From positions 630,203 to 694,202 of the forward strand of contig RHPI01000260.1 of NCBI GenBank assembly GCA_009103225.1: 64,000 nucleotides of DNA, written 5' to 3'. The notes beneath the pieces were generated by a model. That model was not told the origin of the DNA. It made no database searches and saw only the letters and a list, made by a program, of their open reading frames with translations. Positions within the stretch are counted from its first letter, which is position 1. Every line of letters begins with the position of its first letter. The stretch is from Chlorokybus atmophyticus (lineage: Eukaryota; Plantae; Mesostigma and Chlorokybus algae). Positions 11,796-42,327 of the stretch are shown piece after piece. The translations under genes were made by a program, and so were the position numbers.

Positions 11796-14700
11796 ATGTC
11801 GACCCTGTGGAGGCCGTTCAGGGCGCTGGGGTACATCACGGGCCCCGTGCCGTTCTGCGTGCAGCGGCGGGGGAGGGACGTATTCGTCACGGTGTCTGTC
11901 GGCAAAGCTTGGCAAATATTCAACGTGCGTTGGCGTTTCAATCTCTCTCGGTCTCCTTTGCTCTCTCTTTGCATGCATGCTGCTCTGGAGCTGGGATCTG
12001 CTGCTTCACTACCTATAAGAAATCACATTGCCAATGTGCTGTTTGCTTATTCTGTGTACTGCTTTTGCTGCGCAGTGCGCCAAGCTGACTCTTGCCGTCG
12101 TGGGTAAGTGTTTGCTACAGAGTTGTGTTTGTGCGTGCAAATGTGTATATGATTGAGAAAATCTACTTTACTTCCCTGTTGATTGACCGCGCACTTTGTC
12201 ATTCTATAGTTGCATGCAAGTCACTGCATGTTCGCAACTTCTGGACCTGTTGCAATTTGCAAGCCACGTTATTGATGTATCCTTCAGGGCCGCAATTCCA
12301 GCACAACATACGCGCCTTAGCTGTAAAGGGCGACTACACCTTTGCGGCCGTAGGAAGAGACATTGTTGTGTGCAGAAGAGTGCACCAAGTGAGTGCATGA
12401 ACTGAACTGACCACAGCACAACATCGCACAAACTTGTCTTCCCAATCATGTATGATTCTTGCCCAATCAGGTGGCGGTTTGGAGTGGTCATAGTGGCAAC
12501 ATCAACCACTTGTTGCTTTTTGGCGAAGTGCTGCTGAGCGTTGGCGAGGACCACAAGTTGTGCGTATGGAGAACAGACACAATCTTCCCCAAAGACAAAG
12601 ACAACAACCATGACCAAACACGGCCCCCAACAGCAGTCACTACCACACACACAACCCAACCGGAGAGTGTCATCGACTTGGGCGCGGACTTCACACCGAC
12701 ATGTATCACCCACCCTGACACGTACCTCAACAAGGTGTCCACTCGCACTTGCGTCTTGTCGTTTGCTTTGTTTACCAACACCACTTGGCAGCTGCCATTA
12801 CTCACTCCATGCCTGATGACACGCGAAATGAGCCCTACACCCAGTGCATGAGAGACACCAGAGCTCAACATTACATATGCTCAACACCCACATGTCGGCT
12901 TTCAAGAGCATCATCATCATCAGTTCCTAAAACCACACAGCTATCCAACAACATAAACTGTGTCATCAGGTCTTGCTCGGTAGCGAGCAGGGCCATCTTG
13001 CCCTCTACAACATCTCTTCCCTCAAGCGCATCCACCTCTTCCAATCTTTCCAAGTCCCCGTCCGCTGCTGCGTGAACTCTCCCGCCCTCGACACTGTGGG
13101 CATCGGTCTCGCGGACGGTCGGGTGATCGTACACAACATCAAGTATGATGAGACGGTCCTCTCCTTCCAGCACACGTCGCCAGTCACGGCCATCGCGTTC
13201 AGGACGGACGGGATGCCGGTGATGGCGGCGGCGGGGGATGATGGAGCGGTGACGTTGTGGCACCTGGAGCAGAAGAAACTACATGCGGTACGGTGTGTGT
13301 GTGTGCGTGCGTGCGTGGGTGTGCTTGCATGAGTTGTTGCGGTTGGCATATGCATCTCTAGCTTGGATGTGACTGATTTCCGTCGTCATCCGTACGTTGA
13401 CGGGTTGCGTGAGCGAGTATCGGCCAACACGTTTATATGTAACAGTGTGGTCCAATGTTGCCCAGTGCTAGCGGGGACTGACTGCATTGAAAAACCATGC
13501 TCACTACTAGCATCGTGCACCTTTCTGTTCTGTTGCGTGCTATTTGCTTACAACACAGCTATCACCATTTCTCATGCTGCTGCTCGTTCACCTCATCAGC
13601 ACAGTCCACCACACCAACACTCACACCGTTTGTCATACTCACGCAGGTGATCAAGGACGCGCACGACGGCCCCGTCACCTCCCTCTTCTTCTTCCCGCAG
13701 GAGCCGGTGCTGATGTCCGCCGCCAAGGACAACGCCATCAAGCACTGGATGTTCGACACGCCGGACGGGGAGGGAAGACTACTGCGATTCAGAAGTGGAC
13801 ACAGGTGCGTGTTGAGAGCTTTGTGTGTCGGGTCATGTTGGGTTGTTTTGTGTTGAGTGCTTGTCATTTATCCAGATTTATGCGTGCGCTTGCATCAGGT
13901 TCTTGTACACAGCCTGAGACTTCTTTTGTGCAGTGCTCCGCCCACTTGCATCCGCCATTATGGCGAAAGCGGGCGCTACCTTCTGTCTGCTGGCCAAGAC
14001 CGAGCATTCCGCTTCTTCTCCACAATACAGGTATCTCAAACATGCATACAACACCACCTTGACACTCTGTTGTCCTCACAGGACACTCGCGCACTAAAGC
14101 TCGCACCGCAGCACACAACTCACACGCACGCACGCAATATGAAACCTCACATTGATTATCTCACACGACCTCTTGATACGCACGAGTCACATACTGCCTA
14201 TCTGATCATCCATCCCTTCTCTCCCTTTCAGGACCAGCAGTCTCGCGAGTTGTCCCAAGGCAAGGGTCTCGCCCGTCGCGCCAAGCGTATGAGGTTGGCG
14301 GGCGGCGCGGAGGAGCTGAAGCTGTCTCGCGTGACGGCCCTGGCGGCCTCGGAGGTCCGGGCGCGCGACTGGTGCAGCGCGGTTACGGCGCACGAGCATG
14401 ATGGGAACGTGTATACGTGGAGGGTGCAGAATTTCGTCATCGGGGAACACGTACTGCGGCCGCAGGTGAGAGGGGGATGGTTGGTAGGTTTGGTGTGTAC
14501 GCGCAGTGAATGTCGTGTTGTTGTTGCACGCGGCTTGCCATAGCTCACGTGGTTAGCCTTGGCTTAACGTCGTCGTTGTCATTGTCATCGTCATCTTATT
14601 TCTTAGAGGGCAAGATTAGGACAATTGTTGCAGCAACTCTTGCGTGAGCCCCCCCTTGTTGTGTTGCACGTAACAACCCGCGCGCATACGCGTACAACCT

Positions 14701-16819
14701 CAACCCCACTACACGCACTGCGTGTATCATGAATCCAACCCACTCACCCTCTCTTTTCAGGGTGACAATCCCTCTCCTGCCACTGCGGTCGGCATCAGCG
14801 CCTGCGGCAACTTCGCTCTTGTGGGCAGCGACGCCGGGTCCGTCGACCGGTACAACCTGCAGTCGGGGCTGCACCGGGGGTCCTACGCGCGCGACGGCGG
14901 GGATGATGGGGAGATGGTGGGACTCCTTGCGCATGACGCGAAGGTGGTGGGAGTGGACTGCGATGGGTGTAATAGGGTGATGGTCACGGCATCGACGGAT
15001 AAAACTATCAGGGTGAGAGAGAGAGAGAGTAGGGTGCGCTTCTTCACTTTGTGTGGTTGTCGGTTTGTCTGCGTGCGCGGGTGCGTGCGCGTGCGCGTGT
15101 GGATGTACGTGCATGCGCTCCTGCACGTGTGTGCGTGTGTGCACCCACGCATATTAGTGCACCCACGCACACATTTGCGCACCCATGCTCCCACGCGCGC
15201 ATGCACAAACTCGCATATGCGCACAAGCGCCCATGCATTGATGCATGCATGTGCGTACGTGCGCGCGCGCTTGCGCGTGTGTGTGTGCGTGTGCATGGGC
15301 GCACATCTATCTGCCTGCCTGTTCGTGTCACTTGTTTGAAGCAATTGGTCATCAGGCATCTTACGCAAGGGTGACGTGTTCAGGTGTGGGACTTCCGCAC
15401 GCGCCAGTTAAAGTCCACAATCAACGTGGGCGTTGCCTCCACGCGTATGTCACTCCACCGCGGCAGCGGTTTGGTCGCTGTGGCTGGATCAGACTCAACC
15501 TTACGTGTGTTCGACTTCACCGCTTCTCGCCTTGTTCGCAAGTTCAAAGGCCACACCGACCGCATCACCGACACAACATGGAGCTCGGACGGCCGCTGGT
15601 TGATATCCTCCAGCATGGACTGCACCGTGCGCGTGTGGGACGTGCCGGCGGGGAGTTTATTCAACGTCATGCGAGTGAAATCGCCCGTCACGGGGATATC
15701 CGTCTCGCCCGCGTCGGATTTACTCGCCACCACGCACGCGCATCACAACGGGATTTACTTGTGGGCTAATCAGCTTATGTATGGAGATGATGTGGCACAT
15801 GCAAAGCTGGCGAAGCGAGCGCAAGTGGTGAGTATGCCGACTGTGTCGGATATCAACCCGAGGGCCGGCGATATCGATGGTGATGGAGGGTACTATGACA
15901 GCGACGAGGAGTCGATTTTGACTCATGTGGATGCGGAGGGAGCTACCGGTGATATCGATCCCGTGAAGGTGGCAGGAGCGGCCCCAGAGCTGATATCGCT
16001 GTCCATGCTGCCTGCATCGCAGTGGCATGCGCTGCTGCATCTCGACGTCATAAAGGTGGGAACGTGTTCACGCACTCCAATGTTGTGTTACAAACTGTCA
16101 CATGCCGTGTGTTTCTGCGTCACACAGAAAACTCTGTTAGGCGGCTGTAGTGTGGCTTCTGACTTTTGGGCCTCTTGCATGTTAGTTTGTTGTGCATATG
16201 CCAACAATCATATCTTGCTTCGCAGGCGCGCAACAAGCCGATTGCGCCACCGGAAAAGCCCGCTGCAGCGCCTTTCTTCCTGCCAACGTTGCCGTCACTC
16301 ACAGACAAACCCACATTTGTCATTCCCGACAAGCCGTCTACAGATGGAACAAAGACCCCGAAGCGCGACTCGCACGTGCTGAAAGGGTCTGCCAGTGGCA
16401 ATGCACACACGCACTTGCAGCAGTCACTCCTCGACTACGCCGCGGGCACACTCGACGTGGACATCGTGTTGCAAAGGTTGCGCGACACGTCCGCTTCGGC
16501 TTTAGAGGCAGAATTGATGGAAATGGAGCCTATTGGTGGGCCGGATGATGATTATGCGGGCGATGAGGAAGCTATCCACTCCATTGATGCGGCGTTGAAG
16601 TTTATCGATGATGCGTCCGGGACCAACCGAGAGTACGAGCTCGTGCAAGCGTTCCTCTCGCTGGTGCTGAAGATACACGGCAACACCATTGCGGGGAATG
16701 AGCGCCTGAGAGGGCACTTGAATAGGCTGAAACAGCGCCAAGCGGCTGCGTGGAGTAGGCTAGACTCGCTGTTCAACTCCACGCGCTGCTTGCTAGCGTT
16801 TTTCTCAAGTACTCAATAG
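11796..16819 (+). CDS. UTP21: U3 snoRNA-associated protein 21 (WDR36), SSU processome UTP-B subunit
   Basis: N-terminus MSTLWRPFRALGYITGPVPF...VSVGKAWQIFN; ITHPDTYLNK; VIKDAHDGPVTSLFFFPQEPVLMSAAKDNAIKHWMFD...LLRFRSGH; multiple WD40 repeats; Utp21 C-terminal region LISLSMLPASQWHALLHLDVIK-ARNKPIAPPEKPAAAPFFLPT and YELVQAFLSLVLKIHG. Confidence 0.93.
15051..15300. repeat. GT/CA/GC-rich compound low-complexity tract in a UTP21 intron
   Basis: Alternating purine-pyrimidine runs (gtgcgtgcgcgtg, cacgcacac). These generate the spurious R/V/C/H/A-rich ORFs in the ORF track. Confidence 0.8.
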
Positions 16820-23000: not shown

Positions 23001-25063
23001 GTGTCGAGTCACATGACAGATGCAATGCGTTTCATCCTAAAGCAGAGCTGACCTTGAGACTGGCCTTCCTCTGATCATGATACATTCTCTTTTCTTCGCA
23101 GGTAGCATAGGGAAAAGCCTTAGTGGAGGCGGCAAAGCCCGGCTGCGGGCGCTGCAGTCCATAGCAAGGTTGCTGATAGGTGAGACGCCCCAATTGATAC
23201 ACTTTGCGTGCGATGCTTGCATCGCCCATTCAATCTACCAATCGACACATCTTGTTGACTTGATTGTTGCTGCTGTCAACAAGAAATTCAACAAAGGCGC
23301 GTGTTGACTTCTGTTCTTCAAATCTATGTGGACAGATACACTGCCACTCTACCCTCCACCACTGAAGCAAGCCAGGGAGCTCAACAGCGCAGGTAGCGCA
23401 TCATCAACGTGGTTGGCTCTTTCACTTGTACTCATCATCAACATCATCATCATCATCTTTCTTGGTCATCTTTGGATGTACACAACCTGAATTTGGCGCA
23501 GTGGTCAAGCTTGCCAGCAAGTCAGGAGGCGCGGTGGCCCCCGTAGCAACCACCCTTGCGCAGCTGCGAGGCCTTCTTGATACTGGTAGTACAATACAAA
23601 CAAAACAACACTCAACGTTGTGTGCACCATACCAAGCAAATACATTCACTTATCCACGAACACGCGCATGCATGCGCACACACACACTTTGTCTACATAG
23701 ACACTCATGGTTTGTTTCACCATTGCACATGTTCACTTTTTCACTCCATCACTTACTCACTCAAGCATTCAGTCACTAGCTCAAAGACTCTCTGACCCTC
23801 TTTGTGCAGGTGATGGAGGGCGTGTGCGCAGTAGTAGTTGTAATAGTAGAGCAACTGGCGCGTTCACACCTCGCAGGCGCTGCGTGCCATTCGCGCACGT
23901 GCCGGGTTGCACCTGCGTGAGCGAGCGCGACATCAAGGAGCTCAACGCGGCGTTGGACGAGAAGTTTGAGGAAATAAACAGTAGCAGTGAGGTGAAAGAT
24001 GACAGCAACTGCGACGAGGCGCAGGAGTCGCACCTGTACTCGGTGAAAAACTGGGCCATGACTTTGAGGAGTGGTGAGATGCTTTTAACATCAAGTGGGA
24101 AAGCTTATGGGGATGATAATGGCGTTGTCAAGTCCAAAGATGGTGTGGCGGAAGGACTTGTGGACATAGCGGGCGACACGAACAAGCATTCCATTGATAC
24201 CCTTAGCTCCATTTCCGGCAAGGAGCAGGGCCATAGCGAAGCTGGTATGAAAGGTACACACAGATGCATGTTGCTCTATCGTGTCAGGGTGCAAAGCTTC
24301 CATGGTACACTGTGAGTGCATACTGCATGTGGTGATGTGGTTTTGCAAACTGCAGTGGAGAACGGCCATGATGCTGCAACCGCCAACACGCGTATGAAAG
24401 ACAATGACATTGGGGAAGTGCAAGCTTCACTGGCCGCTGCTGGAGACATGTCATCGAGCAGGCCAAGCAACGCGACTGAAGGCTTAGAGAAAGAACGAGG
24501 ACGCCATCGCAGAGCCGCGAGCTATGTCGGTAAGTCCTCACCACATGACACTCTGATATTGTATTGGGTATCGCACCTAACCTCCCGCACATGACATTGG
24601 CATACCTTGCATCACAGAATTGTTGACATCGCGGAGGCTGCAAGGCGACCCGCCCGCATCCTTCTCTCCAGTCCTCTCCAGGGCATTAACATCCAGGAGG
24701 GAGAGCGCTCCTGAGGATATCAACAACACCATGGCCGATAGAGGCACGCCTGAGGGGAGCGGTGTTGATCTCCAGCCCGGTGGTGATCGCGAAGCACCCG
24801 CTCCGGGAAAGACTTATGAGGCATTCCTTCTAGCCAAGAAGAGTGGAGGATGCAGTAGGAGAGGGAGTCTCTCAAGCCGGAGATTAATGAGGAGGGATAC
24901 AAAGGAGACCAGATGGTCTTATGACGGGAGCGTGATGAGCACGAACAATCATGCCAAGCATGGCGAGGAGGGCGGCAGCAACAACAATGTGAAGGAACCT
25001 GCCATTGAACCTGTGATTAAAGCTTTTACAGTAGCTGAGGCAGAGGTAGGCATGATGCATTAG
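20053..25063 (+). CDS. Uncharacterised multi-exon protein (about 14 exons): helical central region, low-complexity termini
   Basis: A chain of phase-compatible exons was reconstructed: MAPRGGRGAAA...; RQESTDLRYGLLLSD; AWVVENYPSYPLE; PLPADVRQLAACALALMP; LLEWLPRAWTARCTLA; GSLEDFECREPDAFEAWRLR; ... AEAEVGMMH*. No family recognised. Confidence 0.6.
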
Positions 25064-25318
25064 GAACCGGTAGCTGGTAAGCTACAGCTTGTACACTACA
25101 CGTACAAGCTACAAACATGTACATGTAGAGCTGCATGTAACAGGTAAATAAGCCATTATTGATTGGGTTCCCAGTCGACCTACTCTCTCTCAGAAGTAAA
25201 CCCAACATCTGCGTGGGATACTTGTTCTCACGTACTTTGCATACGAATGCTAAGTGTCAAGTGATCTCCCGGACTACCCATGTAGTCAGTATGCTCTGCC
25301 GCGATAAGTTAACGCTTG

Positions 25319-28300
25319 TTAACTTGATGCAATGGGCTGCTCCTTCGAGTCCATAGCGCTTAGGAATTGCTGCAATCGTGCCACTTCGACCTCAGTGCAC
25401 TGCAATAAACTTTGCAACTGCGCTGCTTTGCCACTCGCTTTAGATGCATCTGAAAGGGCTTCTCGCGCACACCGCTCGAGTTTCGTGGCGGCATCTGTAA
25501 CAGAATTGATATAAAACTTAGGCAGCAGCACGCATGTTAACTTGTATGTCAAGGTTATACAATGGACTGACCTGCCAAAGCCATCGCGTGCAGCTGCGCA
25601 GAACCGCCTTTGAGCGAATGCGCCGCTCTATACACAACCTGCAACGATATACACATGCAACACCATGAGTACAAAGCTGCCAGGGCGCATGCATAGAAGT
25701 GAACATGACTGTGCACATGTAACTGTAAATGCTGAGATGACTACCACAAACAACGATTGCACATGTTGGTCACCATTACCTTGTACCTAAAACAAGGACA
25801 CCTACTCTCACCTCAATCTCTTCAAGAGTGACAGGCACTGTACGCAAGGCATCACGCATACTTCGGCATCTCAGTTCAGAACTCGTTCGCAGCTCGTTCA
25901 GAAGTGATGCCAAGAAGCTCTTGTCATCGCAGCATATCTCCAGCGCTGCTTCAACATCCAGTATCGCCAGCTGAGAACAGGCTGCCTGGCCACTTGTTGC
26001 ACCATTAACGAATGCAGCATCAGCTTCACTTTGCATAGCCTGCTGTGGGGATGCCGCTTCATCAACCGACCCCAATGAAGGTGTTTGCTGTTTTGAAGAC
26101 GCTTCTGAGGCGCTGCTGCTGCTTTGCATGCAGCGTGCTAATGTGGACAGCAGCTGCGTGCGCTGCACTGGTTTGGTCACGAAATCGTTCATGCCTGCAA
26201 GCAGTCTTGCATCACAACCATGCCGCATGTTGATGACAGTCAGATAATCTCTGTTTATACTGACCTGCTTCAAGGCAGCGCGAGCGATGGCCAGCGAAGG
26301 CCGTGAGGGCAACAATGGGTGTGTTTGCTGCATAGCCGCGCAATTGGCGGATGCGTCTGGTCGCTTCAAATCCGTCACAATCTGGCATCTGGCAGTCCAT
26401 TAATACAGCATCGTACGGGATGTGCGCCTGATGTTCACACACACACATAGTCAGCATATTTGTTGCATGCAATAGCGAGGCAAGTCATCACGCCCAACGC
26501 ACCTGAACGAGTTGTTCAACTGCTTCAAGACCGTTGCACGCTGTATCAATGTCCAGACCCTCCTTCTGCAACAAGTACCTAAAACGTATATATACAATGC
26601 GTGTTGCCAAGCTGGCAAGTTGGCAGATGGCTGACGGCATGCAGCCTACCTCATCAGCTTCAGGTTCTGTTCGTTGTCTTCAACAATCAGCACACGGCGT
26701 CTGGTTTGCCTTGCGGCATCACCACGCAAGACCGACAATACCAATTGCTCATCTGTTTGCGTAGTGGAAGTTTCCGTACTGCTCCCGTCTCTGAACAACC
26801 ATGATAACAAACAATCATCAAGTGGAGTGCATGATGGGTTGGTTCACATCACAATAACTAACATTAGGTATCATCGCAAAGCGCTGAGAGTCTGACTTGG
26901 TACGATAAGCACTTGCCTGGACAGCGCTGCCAGCAATGCACGGCGATGCACAGGTTTGGCAACGATAGTAAGGTTGCCTTGCCAGTCAGGTACTTCAGGT
27001 TGAAGCTGCTTGAGACTGGACTGCGGAGCCAAGATGACAACATGTATGTCGCGACCAGCACTCTTTATGATGGCTGACATGGTCTCACGCAGCGTACGTA
27101 GTGCGATGATGTCTGCTGGAGCAGGCAAGTCCATGACGAGTGCGGCAAAGCGGCCACTTGCCAGCAACAACGGCAACCTGTGAAAGATTAATTGCCATGT
27201 TGGTACCAGGCTCTGTGGTTGGACAAAGCTTTGCAAGCAGCACACTAGCAACTTGCATGCATACATACCGAATGGCAGCAACTGAAGGTGTGGCTTTGTA
27301 ACCCGCGGCTTTGATGTAATCACAAAGCACGTCGCGAACAAGCTGCCTTGGGTGAGCTACAAGGACTGCCTCCCTGCCAGTGACCTGTTCACATGCGAAG
27401 GTTACTCTATGCAAAGCTCCGTGAGACACACTTCAATGACACACTGTCCAACAGTACTCAACAGAAGGCACCCTCACTGTGTCTCAACCCAACATGTAGT
27501 GTGTTTTCAATAGCAAATAACAATCCACACGCCAGCAGCAGTGAGCGTCATTTACTACAGATTCCTCGGGATCGCCTGCTCAGATTGCACCAATGCCAAC
27601 AACGCGAATGAGGCTGCACATTGCATATTCGATCATCCATGTGCAACAATGCCAACCTCGATGTCCTCGGCTGTGCGGGTATCTATGTCCTCTGTGGCAT
27701 CAATCCACTCCACAGTGGCAATCCTATCTTCTGTGGGCTCAGGCTGTGCATTGGGCTTGCGGAGATCAACAAGCGTATCATCATCAAGCATCAGCTGCAC
27801 TTGAAAGGTGAACACGGAACCAAAGCCTTTCTTGGTGGAAACGGTTATGTCGCCACCCATCATCGCGCACAGCTGCCAGTATAGCATATGACAATTGGCA
27901 AGGTTGGCATGGACTCGACACTACAGTAAGCTACTCGATACAAGAGAAAGTGTCAAAGTGTGCGCACACGCGCACGTACCTGCTTGCAAATGACAAGGCC
28001 AAGGCCCATTCCTTCACTGCCAGAGCCTTGCACACCTTGCTGGTCTGCTATGTCGAAGCGCGTGAACAACCTCGGCATCCGGTCCGCAGCAATGCCAACA
28101 CCGCTGTCACGAACACTCACAACCAGTCTGATGGTGCCGTCCGCGCGCACTTCTTGCGCGTACGCTGCTAGGACCACTTCTCCTGTCTCTGTAAACTTCA
28201 CAGCATTTTGTAGCAGGTTGAAAATGATCTGCCATGTGACATGACACATGAGCCTTGGCAGTTGCGTTGTGTGTAACCAATGAGAAAACAAGCCTTCTGT

Positions 28301-30869
28301 GACGCAAAAGGCTAACAAGAACATGTTTGCTTCTTTTTGGCACAAACCTGTTGCAACCGGGTGGGATCACCGTACATGCGGCGTGGCATGCTGGGTTGCA
28401 CAAATGATGCTAGCTCCAAACCTTTTGAATACGCCTGAGGGGCTAACTGATCCATGCACTCTTCCACAAGCACCTGCAAGCAACATTATGTTCTTTTCAG
28501 GTGAGACGAGCAACTCAACACTAACTGGCTTACCTCTATGTCCATCTCTAAGAAGTCCAACGTGAGTTTGCCCGCCTCCATCGCACTCAGATCAAGTATG
28601 TCTTGCACTACAGATCGCAGGTCCTCCGCAGCATTTTGGATCAAACTGCACGACTGGTCTTGCTCTACAGTCAGCTGTGTCGCTGATAACAGCTGCAGCA
28701 ACCAGAGAGTGCTTGTGTGAGCAGCGACAACGCATAAGCTGTTCCATTCTGTTGAGCAGTACGAAGGTTCTGCTTGTTATGAGCTAGTTTCATGCATGCA
28801 TAGAATAAGCAGTTCCTTGCAAAACACGCCGTTCAAACCAACGGTGTCAAAGCTTTGATACCTGCACTGCAGAGATGATGCCCCCCAAAGGTGTGCGAAT
28901 CTCATGAGAAACCTGAAAAGAGTCAGTTGAAGCAACAATTACATACAGCCTTCAATGCGTGACGCTGAACAGAGTAACCGCAGATGTGATTAACGGACCG
29001 TTGCTAGGAACTGGCTCTTGGCATCTTTTGCACCCTGCAGCAGGCAATGCACCGTTTATCAGTCAGCTGTCATAAGGTGTACATGAAAAACATGCACCAT
29101 ACCTGCAGCTCGCGTATCTTGTTCTCATTGTTGGTGACGTCTCTTGACACGCCTATGACAGCTGTGGCCTCCTCGCTACCGCGCGGGACAAACGGCACCT
29201 GTGTAGCAGCAGGTTGGTTTTAACGCTCTCAGCATTAATGCAGTGAAAGGAACCAATGGCTGAATAGAGGCTGTTGCGCACAGCTCAGTCATGGCATGGC
29301 CTGTTCAAGCGCCGATGCTTGTGCTGCATGCAACAGCTTCCGTTTATGGAAGTTAAAGAAACACCGCATGTACTGGCTGCTTGTATGTGTGATATAAGAC
29401 AGTACCCACATAAGCAGCATCGTACACTCGCACGCCAGCCACTGTTGGCATCTCATGCACGGCAAAGACTTGCTCTTTCTTTGTAATGGCCTCCCTTACA
29501 AAGGGCTCAACGCCTGCAATGTAACTGCTTACACGTCAACCCACACATGAGAGCGATCACTCCAAGAATACAAGTACAATCTTACATCCTTGACACAACA
29601 ACTTACTCTTTGCCTATCACATCCTCCAGTGTTATGCCTTTGCCCACATCTTCTGACTTCACCCCCAATATCGCCGCCCCCGTGGCATTGAGATACTTAA
29701 GTTGTAGCTCCCTGACAAGTTGGCAACAAAGTCAACATCCAAGGAAACAATTGTACCTTTCAAACAGGCATGCATTGTCAACCGGTTGCTGTTGGGGGAC
29801 GCAGCAGGTTCTGCTCACCTGTCGTAGATAACAAAAACATCAGTGGATTGTTCCAGGAACTCCAGGATGCTGTCTCGCTTGACAACCTCTTGCGTCAAAC
29901 GCCTCACCGCACGCAGTATGGAACTCTGATCAAAGAGTTGAACCTGGCGTGCGAGCAGTAGCAGGTCAATCTGACTGATTAGTGGTCGTTCATTCGAGAG
30001 AAGCAGTGCTTGCCAATCAGTGTAAAATCACTGCATATCAGCCTGTGTGAATGCATGCTTTACCATCTGTCACATGTTACAATCAACCAAAAGCTGGTCT
30101 GAGTTGATGAAATACAACCGATTGCTATGGCTGACCAGCATTTGGAATGCAAGCAGAGCCAAAGGCACCACAGTGAAGAGCGCGTCGTGCTGCCGAATGC
30201 TCCAGTCCAAGCCCACCACAAGTAAGCAAACCGTAGGCCAGTAGGCATTGTGGATCTGCGCGAAAGTATGAACAGCTCTTTACAAACGACAATTGACCAT
30301 AATACAAAGTTCTTTTCACACTAAACTACCATACGACTGTGTCATAGATGGCATGGCTGGTTTTGTCGGAATGTCAATCATCATGTTTGCTCGTTGCTAA
30401 CGAACATTACACCTACATGTCGATCCATAATGCTCCCAGCGATAGCTTAACCAGCATCTAAGACCAACCCTGCTCAAAACGTACAGCATTCACTTACTGT
30501 AAGCATCCTGGCCTGCAAGCATGCAGTGAGCAAAGCAGCATGGTCCCTCACATCAGCTGACTTGGCGGAGAAGAAGGAGGCAGCCTTGCGTATATTGGGC
30601 GGGGCGCCCCAGGCCACTCGCATGGCAGAGCGCATGTCCTGCCGGCTGAGGCGGACGTCGTCGTCGTCGTCGCCGCCGCCGCCCATGTCGCCCCCGCTTG
30701 CACTCGTCACACCGTCACTGCGCCGGAGGCGCACTGCTCTGCCACCGACCTGGCTCAGCTCCAAACCCTTCAAACCCTTCGCCCTCGTCCAGCTCCGCTT
30801 CCTTCTCCTCCTCGTCCATGCTAACCCCGCCGGCCCCACCACCGCAGACACCGCCGCCGCCGCCGCCAT
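25319..30869 (-). CDS. Hybrid (tripartite/unorthodox) sensor histidine kinase: TM-PAS-HisKA-HATPase_c-REC-REC-HPt, about 20 exons
   Basis: H-box KSQFLAT|[13 protein letters not shown] (His 28904-28906); N/G1/F/G2 boxes [38 protein letters not shown]; [22 protein letters not shown]...IGVSRDVT; REC1 ALVMD...KPV; REC2 VLIVEDN...[20 protein letters not shown]...DFVTKPV; HPt [13 protein letters not shown] (His 25618-25620). The N-terminal exons are least certain. Confidence 0.9.
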
Positions 30870-31216
30870 ATCAATAGCAACCCACTTCTGCGTGTGGTTC
30901 TTGCCAAAGCCACTGTGTGCTGCAAGGCAGGGGTCAATGGTGCAAGCGACAAGTGCATGCAAAAATGGCCTGTGCAGCCTATGCTGGTTACAATGCTTGA
31001 GGTGGTGGCGTATAAGCGCTGCACGCACACGATTGCGCTTTCATTCGCACTGGAGGAGGTGAGTGTTGGGGGGTTGCTGAGGCTCGCTGGGTTTGGTGCG
31101 GGGGGAATGTCAGTGGCTGTGCATGACAATGCTAGTGCACGCACGCACGGGGGGGCCACGCGAGCATGCGTTCGGCTGTATGGGGATGTACAATGATGAA
31201 GTGTCATACTTGCAAG

Positions 31217-31218
<2 letters not shown>

Positions 31219-31258
<40 letters not shown>
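31219..31258. repeat. (CT)n microsatellite, one interruption
   Basis: Seen directly. Confidence 0.95.
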
Positions 31259-31375
31259 GCGGGGGCGCGCGCGCGCACGTGTACCCAACGTATTCCACAC
31301 CTATGGCAGATGCGGTGCTGGCAGTCACGTAGCACGTTCAGTTTGCTGCTCGTGGGAGGACGTGTTGGTGCTTGT

Positions 31376-31384
<9 letters not shown>

Positions 31385-31436
<52 letters not shown>
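31385..31436. repeat. (GA)26 microsatellite
   Basis: Seen directly. Confidence 0.95.
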
Positions 31437-31439
<3 letters not shown>

Positions 31440-31840
31440 TGCGTGCGCACACGCATATGAAGAACTACCAGCGAGGTGGTAGTCATGGGGTGGTAGATGT
31501 AACCATTTTTAGGACACTCGGGTTATATCTGTGAGTCCATGAGGGACAGTATGTGTGCGCGTTCGTGCGCCGCATTGTGTGGCCCACACACGCACATACG
31601 CATACACAGTACGGTTCTGCCTCTACCTTATCAAGTGGGTTGTGGCTGTGGTAGTGGCTGTAGTTGGGATGGTGGGTGTAGGCTGTGACATTGCATCGTC
31701 GTTCAGCCTACACCCACCTACACAGAGTAATCCTGTGTGCAGCTGCTCTTCGTCAGAGTCTCTGACTTGCAAGAGGAAAACTGAGCGTAATCTGAAGCCA
31801 TCCACTCCGTAACCTCAGGCGTAATTAGGGCGTGGCGGGA

Positions 31841-31908: not shown

Positions 31909-34900
31909 ATGGCGAGGGACAACGGGTTGGGCAACGGGAATCACACGAGGCAGGAAGAGGCTGAGGCGGTGGTCAGCGAGTCGCCGGGTCCGTCGCCGCA
32001 GGCAGCGGCTACTGCGGCGGCGGCCTCTGCTGCTGCTGGGAGAAGGCAGCAGCGGAGGGGCTCCCCTATCATAGCAGGTGGACCAATTGTCTCGGACAGG
32101 CCTGTATGCTTTTCCCCCGATGGAACGAGGGCTTGCTGTAGCAGCGGTAGCACGCTGCGTGTCTTCAGCCCGGTTACAGGCCAGACGGTAAGGTTGAATT
32201 TTGGTCCATGCCTTGCTGCATGCCACATGCATGCAAGCTGCTTGCGTAATTGGTATAATTGGGCTTTTATTTGCTATGCAATTGCCCATCCAATTGACTT
32301 TATCAACCACTGCAGCTGCACATTCTCCATGGTCACACACAAAGGGTCACATCAGTTGCCTTGAACCCTTCCAATCCAACACAAGTAAGCGATTGACGTG
32401 TGCTTGCAGATGAATGGTCGTGATTATCCTGCATACAGTACAAGCCGCTTGCAGTGCAGTTGACAAGCATGCTTTGGACTGCGGCATGACTTCATTTGAC
32501 TTTGTGAATGCTAGGCGATCACGTCATCATTAGATGGTTCCTTGAGAGTTTGGGACCACACTGATGGCACCCAGATTAGGGTCATTGAAGTGGGTCTTCC
32601 AGTACATCACATGGTAAGCCAGTACTTCTCAAGGGGAGGTTTCCTTTGTTCATGCAGTGCGAGCTCTTGTCTCACATTGCACATTGTTAAGGTGTTGTCA
32701 GCGGCAACGCCAAATACAGCTTACCTGTTGACTCTTCGGCAAGATAGTGTCTGTTACTCCATATGGACTTTTGACCTGGTCGCTCAGAAAAGGCAGCGTC
32801 AACTAGGGCAGGTACGGGGAATTATCAGCTGCTGCAGTTGGTTGTAGGTACTTCAGGCACTAGTAACTTGTGCAACCTGTTAGGTTAAACAAGAAGCGCA
32901 GTTGCAAGTGAGCGGACCCGGCCACTATATTGGAATAGTGCAACACAACAGGGTTTGGTTGTGGGACGTGCGCACGTCGAAGCGAGCTGTCCTACAGCAC
33001 GACCGCAAGCTCACAGCCCTGGCTATAGACCCAACGGAGACGCGAGTAGCAGCTGGCGATGAACAGGGGAAGCTTGTGCTTTGGCACAGTATTGCAGCTG
33101 CATTCCCCACCAGTGAAATAAAGGGGAATGCACCCCAAGCTAATGGAGCAGGAGCTGTCAAGAGTGTCATGCACTGGCATGCTTTTGAAGTGACCTGCTT
33201 GCTGTTCAGTTCAGATGGCGTGCACCTGTTTTCAGGTGGGTGAAGTCATTGCTGACTAGCAGTAACAGCTCAAGATTGCCGCGTGTTATAGTATGCAGAG
33301 CATGTGCAGCGCACAGTTGATGCTCAACTTCATGCATGCAGGTGGTATGGAGGCTGTGCTTGTAAAATGGCAAGTGCGGTCAGGCAGCCGTAGCTTTCTG
33401 CCCAGGCTGGGTTCTCATCTCTTAGCCCTAGCACACACTCCCGACCCGGCAGTCATTGCTGTATCCTTTGCTGACAACTCCGTGCGTTTGATCAACGTTG
33501 CCACATTCAAGGTGAGTAGAGTTTTCTTTGTGCGTACAGTTCAGTTCAAAGACCGACTGGTGGGATGGCTCTTGATGGTCACCTCCCCTTCATAGGTTGA
33601 GGGCGGTATACAAGGCATAAAACCGCGCAGCTGGGCCAAGACAAAAGACAGTTTACCAGCTGCTGAGCAGCTTGTGGTGGACCCCAAGACTGGTTGCGTG
33701 GTGCTCTCAACTATTGGGGCATTGCTGCAGGTACATCTTTGCTGTGCGCTGTATAGTACACAAGTAAAACAACTCTGCAGACACAAGCCTGTCAGTGTGC
33801 TGCAACAAACAAGTTGTTTGCCTGCAGTTTTATAATGTTGGAGTCGATCGTTCAGAAGGCACATTCGAAGTAGCAAGTCGCAACATGGTGTCGTTGACTG
33901 ATGCGGATGGCAAGAAAACTCCACCTGTGGCGAAGGTCGGTGGTTACTCATACTTAATGTATGTGTGTTAAGGAAGTCAAGTGCTAACAAGGCATGTAAT
34001 GTTGTTGCAGAATCGGGTGGCATACGTTGCCTTCAGTGCGGACGGGTCAAAGATGGTGACAGTTGATGCTCGCCCTACTGAGACGGGGGCCAAGGGGCAG
34101 GCTGAAGATTACAGCTTGAAGTTCTTCTTGCGAGAGGGCGGTACAACCACCTTTCAGTTGAACACGCTGGTTGATGACCCGCATACCGATGCGGTCACTG
34201 CCCTTGTGTATAGCCCAACACAAGACATGGCAGTGACCACATCTGAAGATGGCGACTTCAAGGTGAGGGTTGCTGTCTCGACATGCACATCAATATCTTA
34301 TATTGTACTTGCATAAAGCATTGGTAATCTCATGCTGTCAATGCAGGTGTGGACGCTACAACTTGGGAGGGACGCGCTCAAGACTCGCGAACCATCAATG
34401 CGATGGAGTTGCAGGTCGGTCGGATTCTACAAGCACATGCCTCTACATGCAGCAGCATTCTCAGACGACGGGTCACTGCTTGCCATCGGGGCAGGTGAAG
34501 CCGTGACCATTTGGAACCCGCACACGAACAACCAGCTGGGGACGCTGAGCACAGCCTCCGGCTGGTACAGAACCATGCAGCTTGCATTCCTGCCGAAGTC
34601 AGTGTACTTAGTTGAAGTGGCCAAGAAGGACGCCTCGTACCTCAGAGTATGGAACCTGACCACCGGCAAGGTTGCATGGTGTTGCCAGCTGGACGTATTG
34701 TCCATAGCCACAGATCCCGCAACACCTGGCCGCTTTGCTGCAATTGTCCCGGCTCTTCGCGCTCATAAGAAGGTTACTCATCGGGGTGCGGTGCTGCTTT
34801 TTGATGTGAAGAACACCTCGCCCATAGCAGCTTGGCAAACTGCTGGCGATACAACATCACTTGTCTTCGCGCCCAAGTCCGCTGTGCAACATGGTGCCGA

Positions 34901-35258
34901 TGCTTTGGCTCAAGCAGGCTCCCGTCTGTTGGTGATGAATGCGCAGCGGGAGTTCACCATTGCATCAACATCATCTGATGATCAGCCGGATGGCCGAGCT
35001 AATGTATCTGGTGCTGCTGTGCACCAAGAAGATGCCAATATGTTGAAGGAGGTCTTTGGTGACGCTGAGCCGCCCAGCACGCAAGCTGAGGATGTTATGT
35101 TGGATGTCAGTTTGCAAGGGCGAGCCTTCAAGCCGTGGGGTTCGCTGCTGGACGCACCGTCGCACGTGCTGCCGTCTCTCACCAAGATTTTCCCGGCCAT
35201 GGTAGATACGATGCTGAGGAAACATTCAGCCAACTCGCATGAGATAAATGTCACGTGA
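31909..35258 (+). CDS. WDR75: WD repeat-containing protein 75 (UTP17/NAN1), t-UTP subunit
   Basis: GGPIVSDRPVCFSPDGT, VMHWHAFEVTCLLFSSDG, GGMEAVLVKWQ...RSFLPRLG, DDPHTDAVTALVYSP, WSCRSVGFYK, AAAFSDDGSLLA and the C-terminal APSHVLPSLTKIF all fit the WDR75/Utp17 pattern. Confidence 0.82.
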
Positions 35259-35980: not shown

Positions 35981-38900
35981 ATGGATCTGCCGGACGACAG
36001 AGGTGAGAGACCCCTACTGCTGGTCTGCTCTGGTCTGGAGCTTCATCATCTGGCATTGCTGCTGCACAGTGCACTGGACGGCGCTGTTGCCATGCGCACA
36101 TGCATGCACGCACAGCCCTGCATGCGTATGCTTGTGCGCACATGCACGCACATGTACACGAAGCAGAGGTGGGGTCGGAGGCTTCCTCTGTGGGCGAGGA
36201 GGAGGAGGACGCCGCTGTGTGGCTGCAGGACAAGCAGATCAAGTTTGTGAGGCTCATGTGGTGCGACAGCGCTGGACTGCGCCGCTGCAGGGTAATGACT
36301 GCTGGAAGCAAGCCAGGCCAAGGCTGGTTGTCTGATCACATGCTTCATTCATTTCTGCCTCAGTTGCTGCTGCACAAGATGTGCTTTGAGCTGGTGATCG
36401 TGGTTATCGCTGTGAAAATGAGTGTGGACTGGGAATGTGTTTATGGTTGTGTTGTTGTTGGTTTGCTGCTGACAGCTGTCATGCACAACAGAGCAGCAAT
36501 GAACACATTGTGTTGACTGCTTTCTCACCGCGAGCTTCAATTGCACCAATGGTTGCAGGAACTTCAGTCGCACCCCACGTAGTAATGAAACACCACAACT
36601 AGACTATGTCATATCAACGTGTATAAATGTTGTGCAGGTGATCCCGGCCTCGCGGTTCACTTCGGCATACTCACACGGCATCGGGCTGACCAAAGCCGTC
36701 ATGTCCATGCCAGTATTCGCCGACACGTGAGTTTTGTTGAGCAGTTGCACACAACTCTCTAACACACACTTGTGTGACACGCACACACACACACACACAC
36801 ACACAGTCCAGCCGAAGGCAGCGGCCTGAGTGTCATCGGTGAAGTCCGCATTGTTCCGGACCCTCTCACCCTGCGGAGGTTGCCATGGTGAGTAGCAGTG
36901 GTTAGGTACGTCCAGTTTGATGTTGGTATGTATGTTGTGTGTGCTGCTGTTGGGTTCCCTCACCTAAGCACGGGTACGTGTGGTGTGGTGTGGTTGGAGC
37001 AGGCATCCATCCCATGCACTCTGCATCGTGGACATGCACGAGGCCCCTGGCCGTGTGTGGGACGCCTGCCCACGGAGCTGTCTGAAAAGAATCCTCTCGG
37101 ATGCGATGACTGAGTTTGGATTGGTAGGCACCCTGTTGGCACGTCATGTTGGCGAGATCACACAGCATTTGCCAACATAACGTGCGTGTGTTTTGCCCCC
37201 CAAAAAACTCACATTATCACGTGTCACGTGTCTCAATATCAGACTGTACGAGTTGGCCTGGAGTTGGAGTTCATGTTGCTTAAGCCAACTGGAAGGTAGG
37301 CACATCTGTCTCAGCTGAACGACGACAGCAAGTGAGTATAGTGAGTATACTCTGCAGCAAAGTTGCATTCGTAACAACCATCGTAAATTGGTTTTTCTCT
37401 TTTCTCTGGCAGCGGTCGCTTCGAGCCTGTTGACAATTCAGGCTACTGTCAATCTTCGGCATTCGACGCTCAAGCTGAGCTGCTGGACTCAATGATATCT
37501 ACTCTTGCAGATGTTGGCATAACCGTTGAACAGGTACAAGTTCAAAGGTTTGAGTTGTTGAGTTCATCCCAACACAACAGAAGCAACGCATCGTGGATGT
37601 GTTAAACATGTCTCGTCAGGTGCATGCGGAGTCGTGCGGGGGTCAGTTTGAGCTGTGCCTTCATCACATGCCTGCGCTGGAAGCAGCGGACGCGCTGGTG
37701 CTTATGAAAGAGACGGTGACAGCTGTCGCTCATCGGCACGGGTTAAAGGCCTCTTTCATCCCCAAGTGGGTGGCAATGTTGGTTATGTACTCACCACGCG
37801 CGTGCTTGTTAGGCATGCTAACACACTCATTGATAGGATGTATGCCAATTCAGCGGGAAGCGGTAGCCACTTCCACCTGTCCATAATGGATGATGATCAA
37901 AACGTCTTCGGTGCGCAAGTTGGTTCTGAGCGCCTTTCTTTGCATGGAGGAGGAGGCAATAGGTATGTTGGCACTCGCGCTGTCCTCCCCAACATGCCTT
38001 GTATCACCACTCTTTTAGTGACAAGCAAGGGTGTGGTATGTGTTGATGTCCGTAGCGTGCTGCGCAGATTACCAAAGGGTTCACCGTCCAACTCCCGTTA
38101 TGGCATGTCGCCGCTCGGCCAGCAGTTTGTGGCAGGCCTGCTGCACCATCTCCCTGCCATGCTGCCATTCACTTGCCCTTTGCCAAACAGGTGAGCTATG
38201 CGTGCGTGTGTGCGTGTGTGGGTGTGTGGGTGCGTGGGTCAGCTGCCTGTATATGTGTGTGACTTGACTGCACTGCACTGTGCGTTGAACACTGTGTTTG
38301 CGCAGTTACCAACGCATTACGCCTGGCACGTGGAGCGGTGCGTACTGCTGCTGGGGTGTGGAAAACCGCGAGGCCTCGATACGTGTGTGCTCACCACCCG
38401 GCAGCCCCGCACAGGTGCACTAGTGTGCGGCTTGTTGTTGTTGCACAGTTGCACAAGTGCTGCAGAGTGAGACATGCACGCGATTGGCAGGTGTGTAACA
38501 ATGTTGAGCTCAAGTGTCCCGATGGCGCGTGCAACCCGTACCTCGCGTTGGCCGCTGCAATCCTTTCTGGCATTGATGGCATACGCAAGAAACTTCCCTT
38601 GCCACCACCTGCAGGCACATTACTGATATCCCTGTATAGTCATCATACATACACGCTTGCAACCATGTCACATGGTGTTTGGCTTAAAATCAGGACACAC
38701 CGATCTTGACCTACAAGTGTGGAAATGGCAGATGAAGACCCGCATGCGTTAAGCGAGGATGAACGCGCGAGAAGCAACATCAAGAAGCTGCCGGCCACAC
38801 TTTCAGAAGCGTTGGGTTGTCTAGAAAGGGACACTTTCTTGCAGCTGGGACTGGGATCTGACCTTGTCCAAGCGTACACCGCGGTGAAACAGGTTTGCTT

Positions 38901-39658: not shown

Positions 39659-42243
39659 TCAAGTGACATGCCGAGCGCGCACATGTGCACTCAGAAAGCT
39701 GTGTACTGCGTCCAAGTACACACTGCGCACAGCCTGTGATGCTGCCTCAGCCGCGTCTTGTGCAGCCTTTGCCCTCTCATCTCTCAGCTGTGTATCAGCC
39801 AGCAGCTGCGCGACTATGCTAGCGAGCTCGCAGCCGTCTCTGACCTGCATTGATGTGTGGATGTGTCTATGCAGTCGTTTTGCTGTTGCAAATGTAGGCA
39901 ACACCATCAAGTGCAAACGCACTCGCTCACTACAGTACTCCAAACTATTGCGACTTCTGTATGCAGATATAAACATCATTCACCGAAACAAGGACAAGAA
40001 CAGGCGGACTGGATGTCGGGTAAGATGACCACGCACACAGCCTCGAGTTGACATGTTTTGCACTCATGCGTAACAAGCTTGCGTAATTAGCGCATTGCTA
40101 ACATTGGGTTGTCAATATATTGTCATGCACAAGTCATTGTGTACCTGCCATATGGCGGCCGGGACAGTACCATTGAGGGTGCGCACCAAGCTTGAGAACT
40201 GTCCCAGATGACAACCTGTGACGGACTGGATTTTAGCCACTATACTATGCTTATATCACACTGCATGCTAGCTGCAATATGCATGTGCAATGAATTGCAC
40301 TGGCTGACCTGAAGGCAGAGAATGGTGTACCTGTCATGACGGCACAGCCCAGCTGTGCTGCCTCAACAATATTGTGGCCAGTTGCTCCCTGCACGAGAGA
40401 GTTCCCAACGAACGCAATACCACACGCGGCGTAGAACGCTTTCAACTCGCCTGAAGGAGAAGACGAGTGACTGCTGTGTATGTGTGAGTGAAGTGCAACA
40501 CTCATACTGCACACTGTTTACTCACCAAGCGTGTTCACGATGTAAACATCAGCGGGTTCAGCAGCAGAGTGACCACCCGCTCGCAAGCACACAGCAAGCC
40601 CTTGTCTTTGCAAGTCCTGTACACACGTGAACACGCGTGGTTAACGCTGACTGTCAAGCATGCCAGAGTTGGGTGTCATGGCTTGCTCTCTACCTTGACA
40701 ATGCGCTCTGTCCGTGACGTATGCCGTGGGGCAATGATGGTTAGGAGATCAGGCCACTGCTGCACGAGTGCTCTGTGAACGCGGCCGGCCACTACACAGA
40801 GTGCCCTGATCAGCCAGTGTATCAGTAGCAAGAAGCACAACAAGTGCCAACACAAACATGCGCTGTACCAATGCCCATGCATGCTTCCCTCATACCTTGC
40901 TCCTCGCCCGCGTGCGTGGAAGCAGCCAGCCACACTGGCCTGCCGACAATTACAGTTGCGTGGATCTCTTCGACAGCGCTTGCCAGCATGTGGTCCTTGC
41001 TATCTGGCTTATAGACTGACAACGTATACACACATGTAAGTCACCGAGTGACTGTGCATGCATATCTCACAACATTGATGCCATTATACGTGTAATAATA
41101 CACTGCATTAGCCGATTTACCAGGGAAGAGCTTCAGGTTGCCCGGTGAACGTATCAGTCGATCGGCAGGTGCGCCCAGTAGCAGCAGCCGCTGTGCCTCA
41201 TCATCATCCTAAGCACGGAAGCACGCTTGTCCTGAGCAAAGAGTGCTCTGCATGACGCGCATGCATGCTTTGCAGCGTGAACGTGTGCGAGCTTGCTACT
41301 TACCATGGCGATAATCGATGTTATGGTTTGCAGCATTCCCTTCACCATGTCTCTCCCACCAGGCAAAGCGCACCACCGAGCTGCGCTACGAGGTGATATG
41401 CGCGCGTTGATGAGAGCTATTGGGACCTATGAGGCGCATTGAAGCAGCATTGTCTACCAATAACAGAGAAGATCACGAGCTGAAGACAGCACACAACATG
41501 CGTAGGTTTTCTAATCTCAATCTGGCGTGTTGCACGACTCCCAAACTAAGCTACGTAGCTTTTCAATTTCAAGACTAAACTCAGACTAAGAACGCCTGGA
41601 TTCAATGCATGTGGCCAAGCAAGCAGCGCACAATATGGTAGACATGCTTCAATGTAGCTGGACGACGAACGGATCCCGGGCAACATACCTTTCTGCGTGC
41701 TGCTTCGGCAATGGTGTTGGGCCAGAGCTCAGACTCGACCAGCAGCAGCGCTGAGGGTTCGGCCTGGTCGAACCAGGCTTTGACAGCTCTGGGCGTGTCA
41801 ATGGGAGCCTGGCAGGCGGCGACTGAGGCTAAGGGAGAGGTGCAGTTCAGCGGACTGGCAGCCTTCCCAGCTAGGGTTTGAGCTGCCGCAGCGTCGCAGG
41901 CGGTGAGCAGCACCCTCAGCGGGCGGCGGCGGAGCTCCTTGCGCTCTGCCACCTCCTTGACGAGGGGCAGGGCGGCGGTGACTTCTCCGAGGGAAGCGCC
42001 ATGCACCCAGAGGGTGATGGTGTCAGTGGCGTGGCTGTCGTCATCGCCGACGCCGACACCCACGCCGTCGCCGCCGCCATTGGCCCTGCGAGGCAAGCCC
42101 AGACGCAGCAGCGGCTCCAGTAGCCATGTCAGGGCATAGTACACCCTCTGCGCATTGACAGGCAGCACCACATGATGCTCCTCCTCCTGTTCTTCCTGAT
42201 CCTCCTTCCCCACCCTCGCCGCCGCCTGCAATGGCGACCCCAT
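39659..42243 (-). CDS. KDTA: 3-deoxy-D-manno-octulosonic acid (Kdo) transferase, WaaA/KdtA family
   Basis: LWVHGASLGEV, APID, LLLVESELWPNTI, ALINARIS, GNLK, VWLAASTHAGEE, IIAPRH, AFVGNSL...GHNIVEAAQLGCAVMTG. Confidence 0.92.
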
Positions 42244-42327
42244 CCACCTCACTGCGTACAGGGCGCCACCTTTCTGCGTCACACTGCTTTGCTGCAGAGT
42301 GCACTATAGAACGGTGGTAATGCGACC

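Follow-up and report, generated by a model that had tools for sequence, protein, structure and literature searches.

A spliced nuclear gene of Chlorokybus atmophyticus for a hybrid histidine kinase with a fused HPt domain, probably of bacterial ancestry

In the textbook view of plant two-component systems, eukaryotic hybrid histidine kinases (HKs) pass their phosphate to separate HPt shuttles. Bacterial kinases of the BarA/GacS, TorS, ArcB and EvgS/BvgS class unite a HisKA-HATPase core, a receiver (REC) and a C-terminal HPt domain with an HxxKG histidine, and they have these features in common with the gene product described here: a hybrid kinase of Chlorokybus atmophyticus, encoded on the minus strand of a 64,000-nt stretch of contig RHPI01000260.1 (positions 630,203 to 694,202; assembly GCA_009103225.1). 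We call this whole stretch the window, and all coordinates below are counted within it. Following up an earlier note made from the letters of this DNA, we find an expressed nuclear gene at this locus, and we consider it likely that it encodes a functional unorthodox hybrid kinase, that it descends as a single unit from an HK-REC-REC-HPt kinase of bacteria, and that its domestication is old.

A 2015 census found an HK-RR-HPt protein (RR, response regulator) in no eukaryote (PMC4558063), and according to a 2021 review none of the hybrid kinases of eukaryotes is reported to carry an HPt domain of its own (PMC8142344). Kabbara et al. (2018), however, described HK-REC-HPt fusions in Physarum, Albugo, Guillardia and Emiliania, with none in Archaeplastida and with Chlorokybus unsampled (PMC6324907). 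The premise of the earlier note, that such fusions are a bacterial trait, has to be relaxed for these few eukaryotic cases. The published two-component inventory of Chlorokybus comprises 1 CHK, 1 HPT, 1 RRB and 0 RRA (PMC10338860), and we found no report of an HK-REC-HPt fusion in green plants in the literature. The mechanism itself is not new; the Chlorokybus kinase holds in one chain an arrangement that is normally split between separate proteins in the plant lineage. An expressed HK-REC-HPt kinase in an early-diverging streptophyte would set a closed bacterial-style relay beside the AHP pathway at the root of the lineage leading to land plants.

A single spliced gene and its transcripts

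Four public transcript runs hold parts of the window (X1-X4). In run X1, one contig of 4510 nt spans the locus in successive exon blocks that show zero mismatches to the window, and represents one spliced mRNA from exon 1 through the HPt exons. Fifteen joints are listed for this contig, and their plus-strand ends read CT..AC (GT..AG on the minus strand) in all cases except one, which is GC..AG. The shorter contigs of run X2, which belongs to a different study dated 2013, repeat eight of the joints, including all three of the 3'-most. The earlier note had proposed checking that the HPt exons splice to the second receiver (REC2), and the receiver/HPt joints are indeed present in contigs of both X1 and X2. 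Moreover, REC2 ends and the HPt domain begins within exon 18, so that the fusion is independent of any splice; a separate AHP gene is ruled out, since this exon alone carries both. The transcript contigs and the shared exon together bear out the earlier view of a single spliced and expressed gene in which kinase, receiver and HPt domain are fused.

The gene model was rebuilt from the transcript contigs over 25250-31050 together with reading-frame and length constraints, and runs from an ATG at 30869 to a stop codon at 25322-25324. Four joints for which no coordinates were printed were placed by depth bins and by the condition that the exons between contig positions 1341 and 4191 add up to exactly 2850 nt in an open frame, and the four introns inferred in this way agree with the public model introduced below. 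Introns range from 60 to 296 nt; 18 of the 19 have GT-AG ends and the remaining one has GC-AG ends. The estimate of about 20 introns and the coordinates first assigned to the gene are thus matched by a model of 20 exons and 19 introns. Stop-free segments of the minus strand from about 30900 to 25300 hold the kinase, receiver and HPt pieces, and single segments gave Pfam matches to HisKA, HATPase_c and Response_reg. Single exons are too fragmentary for PAS, the first receiver (REC1) and HPt, and full-length domain calls were made on the public protein.

This protein, P0001, has 1008 amino acids (aa) and corresponds to EukProt EP00898 from Chlorokybus atmophyticus (JGI Chlat1 1478). The rebuilt protein is 98.6% identical to it, the differences being the 5' end and two residues. 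The JGI model starts at ATG 30819 and joins its frames via a 16-nt GT..AG "intron" at 30735-30750, a stretch that the X1 transcript retains; the open reading frame (ORF) that fits the transcript begins at ATG 30869, so that its N-terminus differs and is basic, and the X1 contig is colinear with the window over 30552-30871. The 5' end of JGI Chlat1 1478 is accordingly doubtful. The two-residue difference arises from another donor that P0001 uses at the GC-AG intron. The fused architecture is, then, already contained in a public automatic gene model, although no paper discussing it was found. Database searches used P0001 and exon sequences as queries, and P0001 positions are converted to the rebuilt model by an offset of +22 as far as aa 675 and of +24 from there on.

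Several side observations concern the transcripts and the gene ends. Runs X3 and X4, from the study of X1 and under the same organism label, match only GC-rich low-complexity bits of the window (30650-30870 and 26112-26132); either the gene is silent there or the strains are divergent, and these runs are uninformative on the presence of the gene in other strains. Beyond the 3' end of the kinase gene, the X1 contig runs 1340 nt past 25250 (window 23900-25321), so that either the 3' untranslated region (UTR) measures about 1.4 kb or the contig has merged with a convergent gene next to it; neither of the plus-strand ORFs at 23707-24315 and 24620-25063 matched Pfam. Immediately upstream of the gene lie long (GA)n/(CT)n microsatellite tracts at 31200-31460, and ATGs at 31207, 31167, 31124, 31044 and 30958 would constitute upstream ORFs if the 5' UTR extends so far.

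Domains and phospho-acceptor residues

From its N-terminus the protein consists of a basic region, a hydrophobic segment, PAS, HisKA, HATPase, a degenerate receiver, an intact receiver and HPt (Table 1). A Pfam check of full-length P0001 confirmed PAS, kinase, receiver and HPt, with five domains all above the Pfam thresholds, and every motif quoted in the earlier note was located (SHEIRTPL, the N, G1, F and G2 boxes, [21 protein letters not shown] and AAHSLKGG). Where several hydrophobic segments had been proposed, a hydrophobic stretch is present, but only one segment reaches transmembrane-like hydropathy. The phospho-acceptor His308 lies in the SHEIRTPL motif (encoded at 28904-28906), and the HATPase boxes follow at aa 421-430 (N), 458-463 (G1), 472-476 (F) and 490-495 (G2). 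REC2 has the complete set of receiver site residues, namely Glu735/Asp736, Asp781, Thr812 and Lys832. The HPt domain scores 32 bits in Pfam against a cut-off of 24.6; its acceptor His959, in AAHSLKGG (encoded at 25618-25620), aligns with a nearly invariant histidine column, and its AlphaFold2 model is a helical bundle with a predicted local distance difference test (pLDDT) score of 92-97. The protein thus carries the H-box DHp, GHKL ATPase and attached receiver of a hybrid HisKA kinase, and on the same polypeptide the C-terminal HPt domain with an HxxKG histidine that marks the unorthodox type.

The first receiver is another matter. The earlier note counted two receiver domains and judged that all predicted phospho-acceptors look intact, and this holds for REC2 but not for REC1, which is a degenerate receiver unseen by Pfam whether single exons or P0001 were searched. 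Alignment with 24 collinear bacterial relatives shows that the Mg-binding acidic pair DD has become Ala-His and the Thr/Ser position Ala, while Asp627 and Lys685 are retained; REC1 consequently lacks the residue set of a phosphorylatable receiver. Receiver profiles built from bacteria only barely detect it (2-4 bits, vs 85-133 bits for REC2), and a word search with the REC1/linker region matched the query protein itself and nothing else. Its identity as a receiver is nevertheless supported by the fold. AlphaFold2 predicts an alternating five-strand, five-helix structure with a pLDDT of 79.5, in a model that owes much to its input alignment of true receivers, and Foldseek relates REC1 to the receivers of CheY, PhoP and PhoB (E 3e-6, template modelling score 0.57-0.75). 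It also aligns with the first receiver of the bacterial relatives, which is mostly intact there (VLIVDDN ... LAILDMxMP ... LT(S) ... KPV), and one of these relatives, P0175, has a REC1 that decayed in a similar way. Judging from its residues, phosphorylation of REC1 is unlikely, and the credible relay acceptors in the sequence are His308, Asp781 and His959 only.

Table 1. Features of the kinase gene and of its neighbourhood in the window (residue numbers follow the rebuilt model unless marked P0001)
Feature	Coordinates	Strand	Evidence and remarks
Hybrid kinase coding region	25322..30869	-	20 exons, 19 introns, 1031 aa; transcript contigs and model building
Exon 1	30552..30869	-	aa 1-106; basic Ala/Arg/Ser-rich, transit-peptide-like N-terminus; start codon provisional
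Hydrophobic segment(s), aa 112-148	29938..30240	-	Kyte-Doolittle maximum 2.1; transmembrane-like peak aa 131-150
PAS sensor domain, aa 176-285	29127..29856	-	exons 3-6; Pfam PAS_4 E 1e-9, P0001 154-263
HisKA/DHp, aa 298-363	28570..29022	-	Pfam HisKA E 3.8e-17, P0001 276-341
HATPase_c, aa 410-527	27792..28371	-	Pfam E 1e-24, P0001 388-505
Degenerate REC1-like receiver, aa 573-697	26919..27384	-	collinear with bacterial REC1; AlphaFold2 fold; Foldseek
Sole GC-AG intron	26791..26916	-	joint 26790/26917; plus-strand ends CT..GC; runs X1 and X2
Intact receiver REC2, aa 731-843	26139..26693	-	Pfam Response_reg E 1.9e-27, P0001 707-819
Exon 18	25812..26194	-	REC2 end (KPV), linker and first HPt helices; flanking joints in X1 and X2
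HPt, aa 922-994	25436..25904	-	exons 18-20; Pfam Hpt E 1.5e-7, P0001 898-970
Utp21/WDR36	13857-16819	+	small-subunit processome gene; flanks kinase within 20 kb
WDR75	34332-35258	+	small-subunit processome gene; flanks kinase within 20 kb
Glutamine synthetase fragment	37655-38194		
Kdo-transferase domain	41602-42282	-	

Relatives of the kinase and its origin

The relatives of the kinase that carry organism names are all bacterial. When the 83-aa HATPase exon was searched with HMMER against 1.84 billion representative proteins, P0001 was recovered at 100% identity and the next matches at 37-51%; of nine that were looked up, four are named for bacteria (Kofleriaceae, Opitutaceae, Rhodocyclaceae and others) and the rest are metagenomic. 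A word search with aa 270-1008 listed 120 proteins, most of which carry REC and Hpt, and the sole EukProt entry among the matches listed was the query. Organism names among them are bacterial throughout, covering tubeworm endosymbionts, Deltaproteobacteria, Thiotrichaceae, Steroidobacteraceae, Planctomycetes, Chloroflexota, Magnetospirillum and others, with no cyanobacterium among the organism-named relatives listed; the unnamed matches come from metagenome contigs. A feature search of the ESM Atlas returned bacterial clusters only, several of them named ArcB, and among solved structures the best sequence match was bacterial ShkA (6qrj, 190 bits).

The similarity extends over the whole relay. 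BLAST aligned P0001 with bacterial proteins in single alignments from DHp to HPt at 32-34% identity (e.g., P0204, P0202, P0181 and P0256), and REC2 alone is 50-56% identical to the receivers of bacterial hybrid kinases. In a MAFFT alignment the bacterial relatives keep the same HK-REC1-REC2-HPt order and spacing, and profiles built here assign exactly this architecture to 47 of 272 fetched relatives. A FastTree phylogeny of the kinase core covered these 272 proteins, and the rows nearest to P0001 in the tree carry the HK-REC-REC-HPt architecture. The assignment to the bacterial unorthodox type made in the earlier note is thereby upheld, the domain order being common to about 25 aligned relatives in addition to the bacterial names.

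The gene is at home in its surroundings. Its exons have a guanine plus cytosine (GC) content of 55% and its introns one of 46%, within a window range of 45-58%, and its flanks hold ordinary eukaryotic genes (Table 1), which excludes contamination; no other two-component gene, including any response regulator, was found in the window. Long domestication, as proposed at the outset, agrees with 19 spliceosomal introns, a GC content like that of the surroundings and eukaryotic neighbours. Taken together, these sequence comparisons are best read as the result of an old acquisition from bacteria. A complete bacterial HK-REC-REC-HPt gene would have been acquired and would then have gained introns and a eukaryotic 5' region, with REC1 decaying and the relay being kept.

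Certain observations weigh against this reading. The HPt domain shows weak similarity to any HPt in BLAST (25-40% identity), and the terminal branch of P0001 measures 0.99 against a median of 0.37 and falls into no supported clade that would point to a donor or a date. Among solved structures, a 644-aa entry, 7p8e, whose sister entries are titled "histidine kinase 4", scores 187 bits, about equal to ShkA. The argument for a bacterial origin proceeds from the ranking of hits, and the tree of relatives holds no other eukaryotic kinase. Finally, localisation and start codon are uncertain.

The same architecture could also have been assembled within the alga, if an AHP-type HPt gene of the host became fused to a hybrid kinase already present there and so came to mimic the bacterial order. 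Stand-alone HPt genes exist in eukaryotes, Chlorokybus is listed with one HPT (PMC10338860), and the HPt domain of the kinase is divergent enough that BLAST to bacterial HPt domains is weak. We nevertheless regard such a fusion as very unlikely, because bacterial relatives are collinear through the linker into the HPt domain within one alignment and because no similar stand-alone HPt was found: no stand-alone HPt-sized protein matched the HPt region at E <= 0.01, which excludes just a close AHP relative. A profile made from bacterial HPt domains alone, moreover, scores 38 bits on P0001 aa 889-969, and in a structure search with the HPt region, marginal as its matches are, the plant HPt structure 4g78 reached E 0.46 vs 0.006 for the top-ranking chain, 7c1i ("Histidine kinase").

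Vertical descent from an ancient eukaryotic kinase, or from a cyanobacterial one brought by the plastid endosymbiont, with loss in other green lineages, would fit the 19 introns, the very long branch, an identity of only about 33% to any bacterium and the scattered eukaryotic fusions of Physarum, Albugo, Guillardia and Emiliania (PMC6324907). It seems unlikely to us, given that no EukProt protein but the query appears among the 120 listed or closely matches the HATPase exon, that the organism-named relatives include no cyanobacterium, and that the degenerate REC1 is without any match apart from itself. That the gene is a bacterial contaminant, or a chimera of assembly or transcript, might be suspected from the bacterial character of the closest relatives and from transcript support that consists of assembled contigs, not raw reads. 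The chance of this is negligible, as two independent assemblies show 19 introns with canonical sites spliced out in frame, the contigs match the window without mismatches, the neighbouring genes are eukaryotic and the REC2-HPt junction falls within a single exon; we reject contamination and assembly chimera on these grounds. Acquisition of a whole bacterial kinase gene, followed by long residence in the nucleus, therefore remains the account that we prefer.

Proposed relay and comparison with known systems

How the kinase might work, from the signal it senses and the path of the phosphoryl group to the part played by REC1 and the last acceptor, is inferred from what is known of the family. The juxtamembrane PAS domain would read a signal and control autophosphorylation of His308 in the DHp domain; the phosphoryl group would pass from His308 to Asp781 of REC2, from there to His959 of the kinase's own C-terminal HPt domain, and last to the aspartate of a separate response regulator. 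REC1, its phosphorylation pocket lost, probably serves as a structural or regulatory spacer like the pseudo-receivers of ShkA or PleD. With the HPt step built in, such a relay would be independent of the alga's stand-alone HPt protein.

We also considered, as an improbable extension of this scheme, that the kinase is imported into the plastid and that its HPt domain phosphorylates the plastid-encoded, RpaB-like Ycf27. In cyanobacteria, RpaB is usually partnered by a plain kinase of the Hik33 type. The N-terminus consistent with the transcript ([27 protein letters not shown]) has 13 R/K vs 2 D/E in its first 60 aa, and its Ala/Arg/Ser-rich composition resembles an organellar presequence, with the start codon provisional. 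Chlorokybus is alone among green-lineage plastid genomes in possessing ycf27, and a plastid-encoded kinase is absent there (PMC2677595, PMC1885438). Were the kinase located in the plastid, a self-contained relay would make sense in a compartment where cytosolic AHPs are absent.

As in ArcB, a PAS domain directly precedes DHp in the Chlorokybus kinase. To the plan of the class of BarA, TorS and ArcB the Chlorokybus kinase adds a degenerate receiver and is a nuclear gene of 20 exons. Its best NCBIfam matches are BarA (322 bits, cut-off 890), TorS (298, cut-off 676) and ArcB (274, cut-off 838), and scores so far below the equivalog cut-offs rule out orthology with a named system; the cut-off was reached for none of BarA, TorS, ArcB, RcsC and EvgS. 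Identical domain order and spacing are found in uncharacterised bacterial HK-REC-REC-HPt proteins from metagenomes and metagenome-assembled genomes (e.g., P0187, P0204, P0202, P0181 and the Steroidobacteraceae protein P0256). These relatives differ in that their own REC1 is mostly intact (DD...D...T/S...K) and their sensors are of other kinds, CHASE8/HAMP or multi-PAS, whereas the Chlorokybus HPt domain has insertions of 5 aa and 9 aa and the linker is longer.

For the tandem of receivers, the best Foldseek fits are ShkA and PleD, each of which has one pseudo-receiver; in ShkA, the best fold match of all (Caulobacter, 6qrj; E 1.3e-11 over 278 columns), a non-phosphorylatable receiver precedes an active one as it does here. 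In the literature, ShkA is described as lacking a fused HPt domain, with ShpA in its place, and as gated by c-di-GMP, a ligand of which there is no indication for the Chlorokybus kinase. Among eukaryotes, the fusions described by Kabbara et al. (2018) in Physarum (PpolyHK5/18), Albugo, Guillardia and Emiliania place the HPt domain after the C-terminal receiver, as the Chlorokybus kinase does (PMC6324907). All of them belong to other lineages, those of Albugo, Guillardia and Emiliania have multiple PAS repeats, and none is among the relatives listed here; the comparison with them is by description. The AHK kinases of plants, which like the host belong to the Streptophyta, have in common with the Chlorokybus protein a kinase core and a receiver-like domain followed by a true receiver. 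Plant AHK receptors, however, are without an HPt domain and rely on soluble AHPs, whereas the Chlorokybus kinase has its HPt domain fused and senses through PAS_4, with no CHASE or ethylene-binding sensor. It resembles plant AHKs far less than it does its bacterial relatives, and with this sensor, this HPt domain and bacterial names among its relatives it stands outside the plant-type AHK/CHK receptors.

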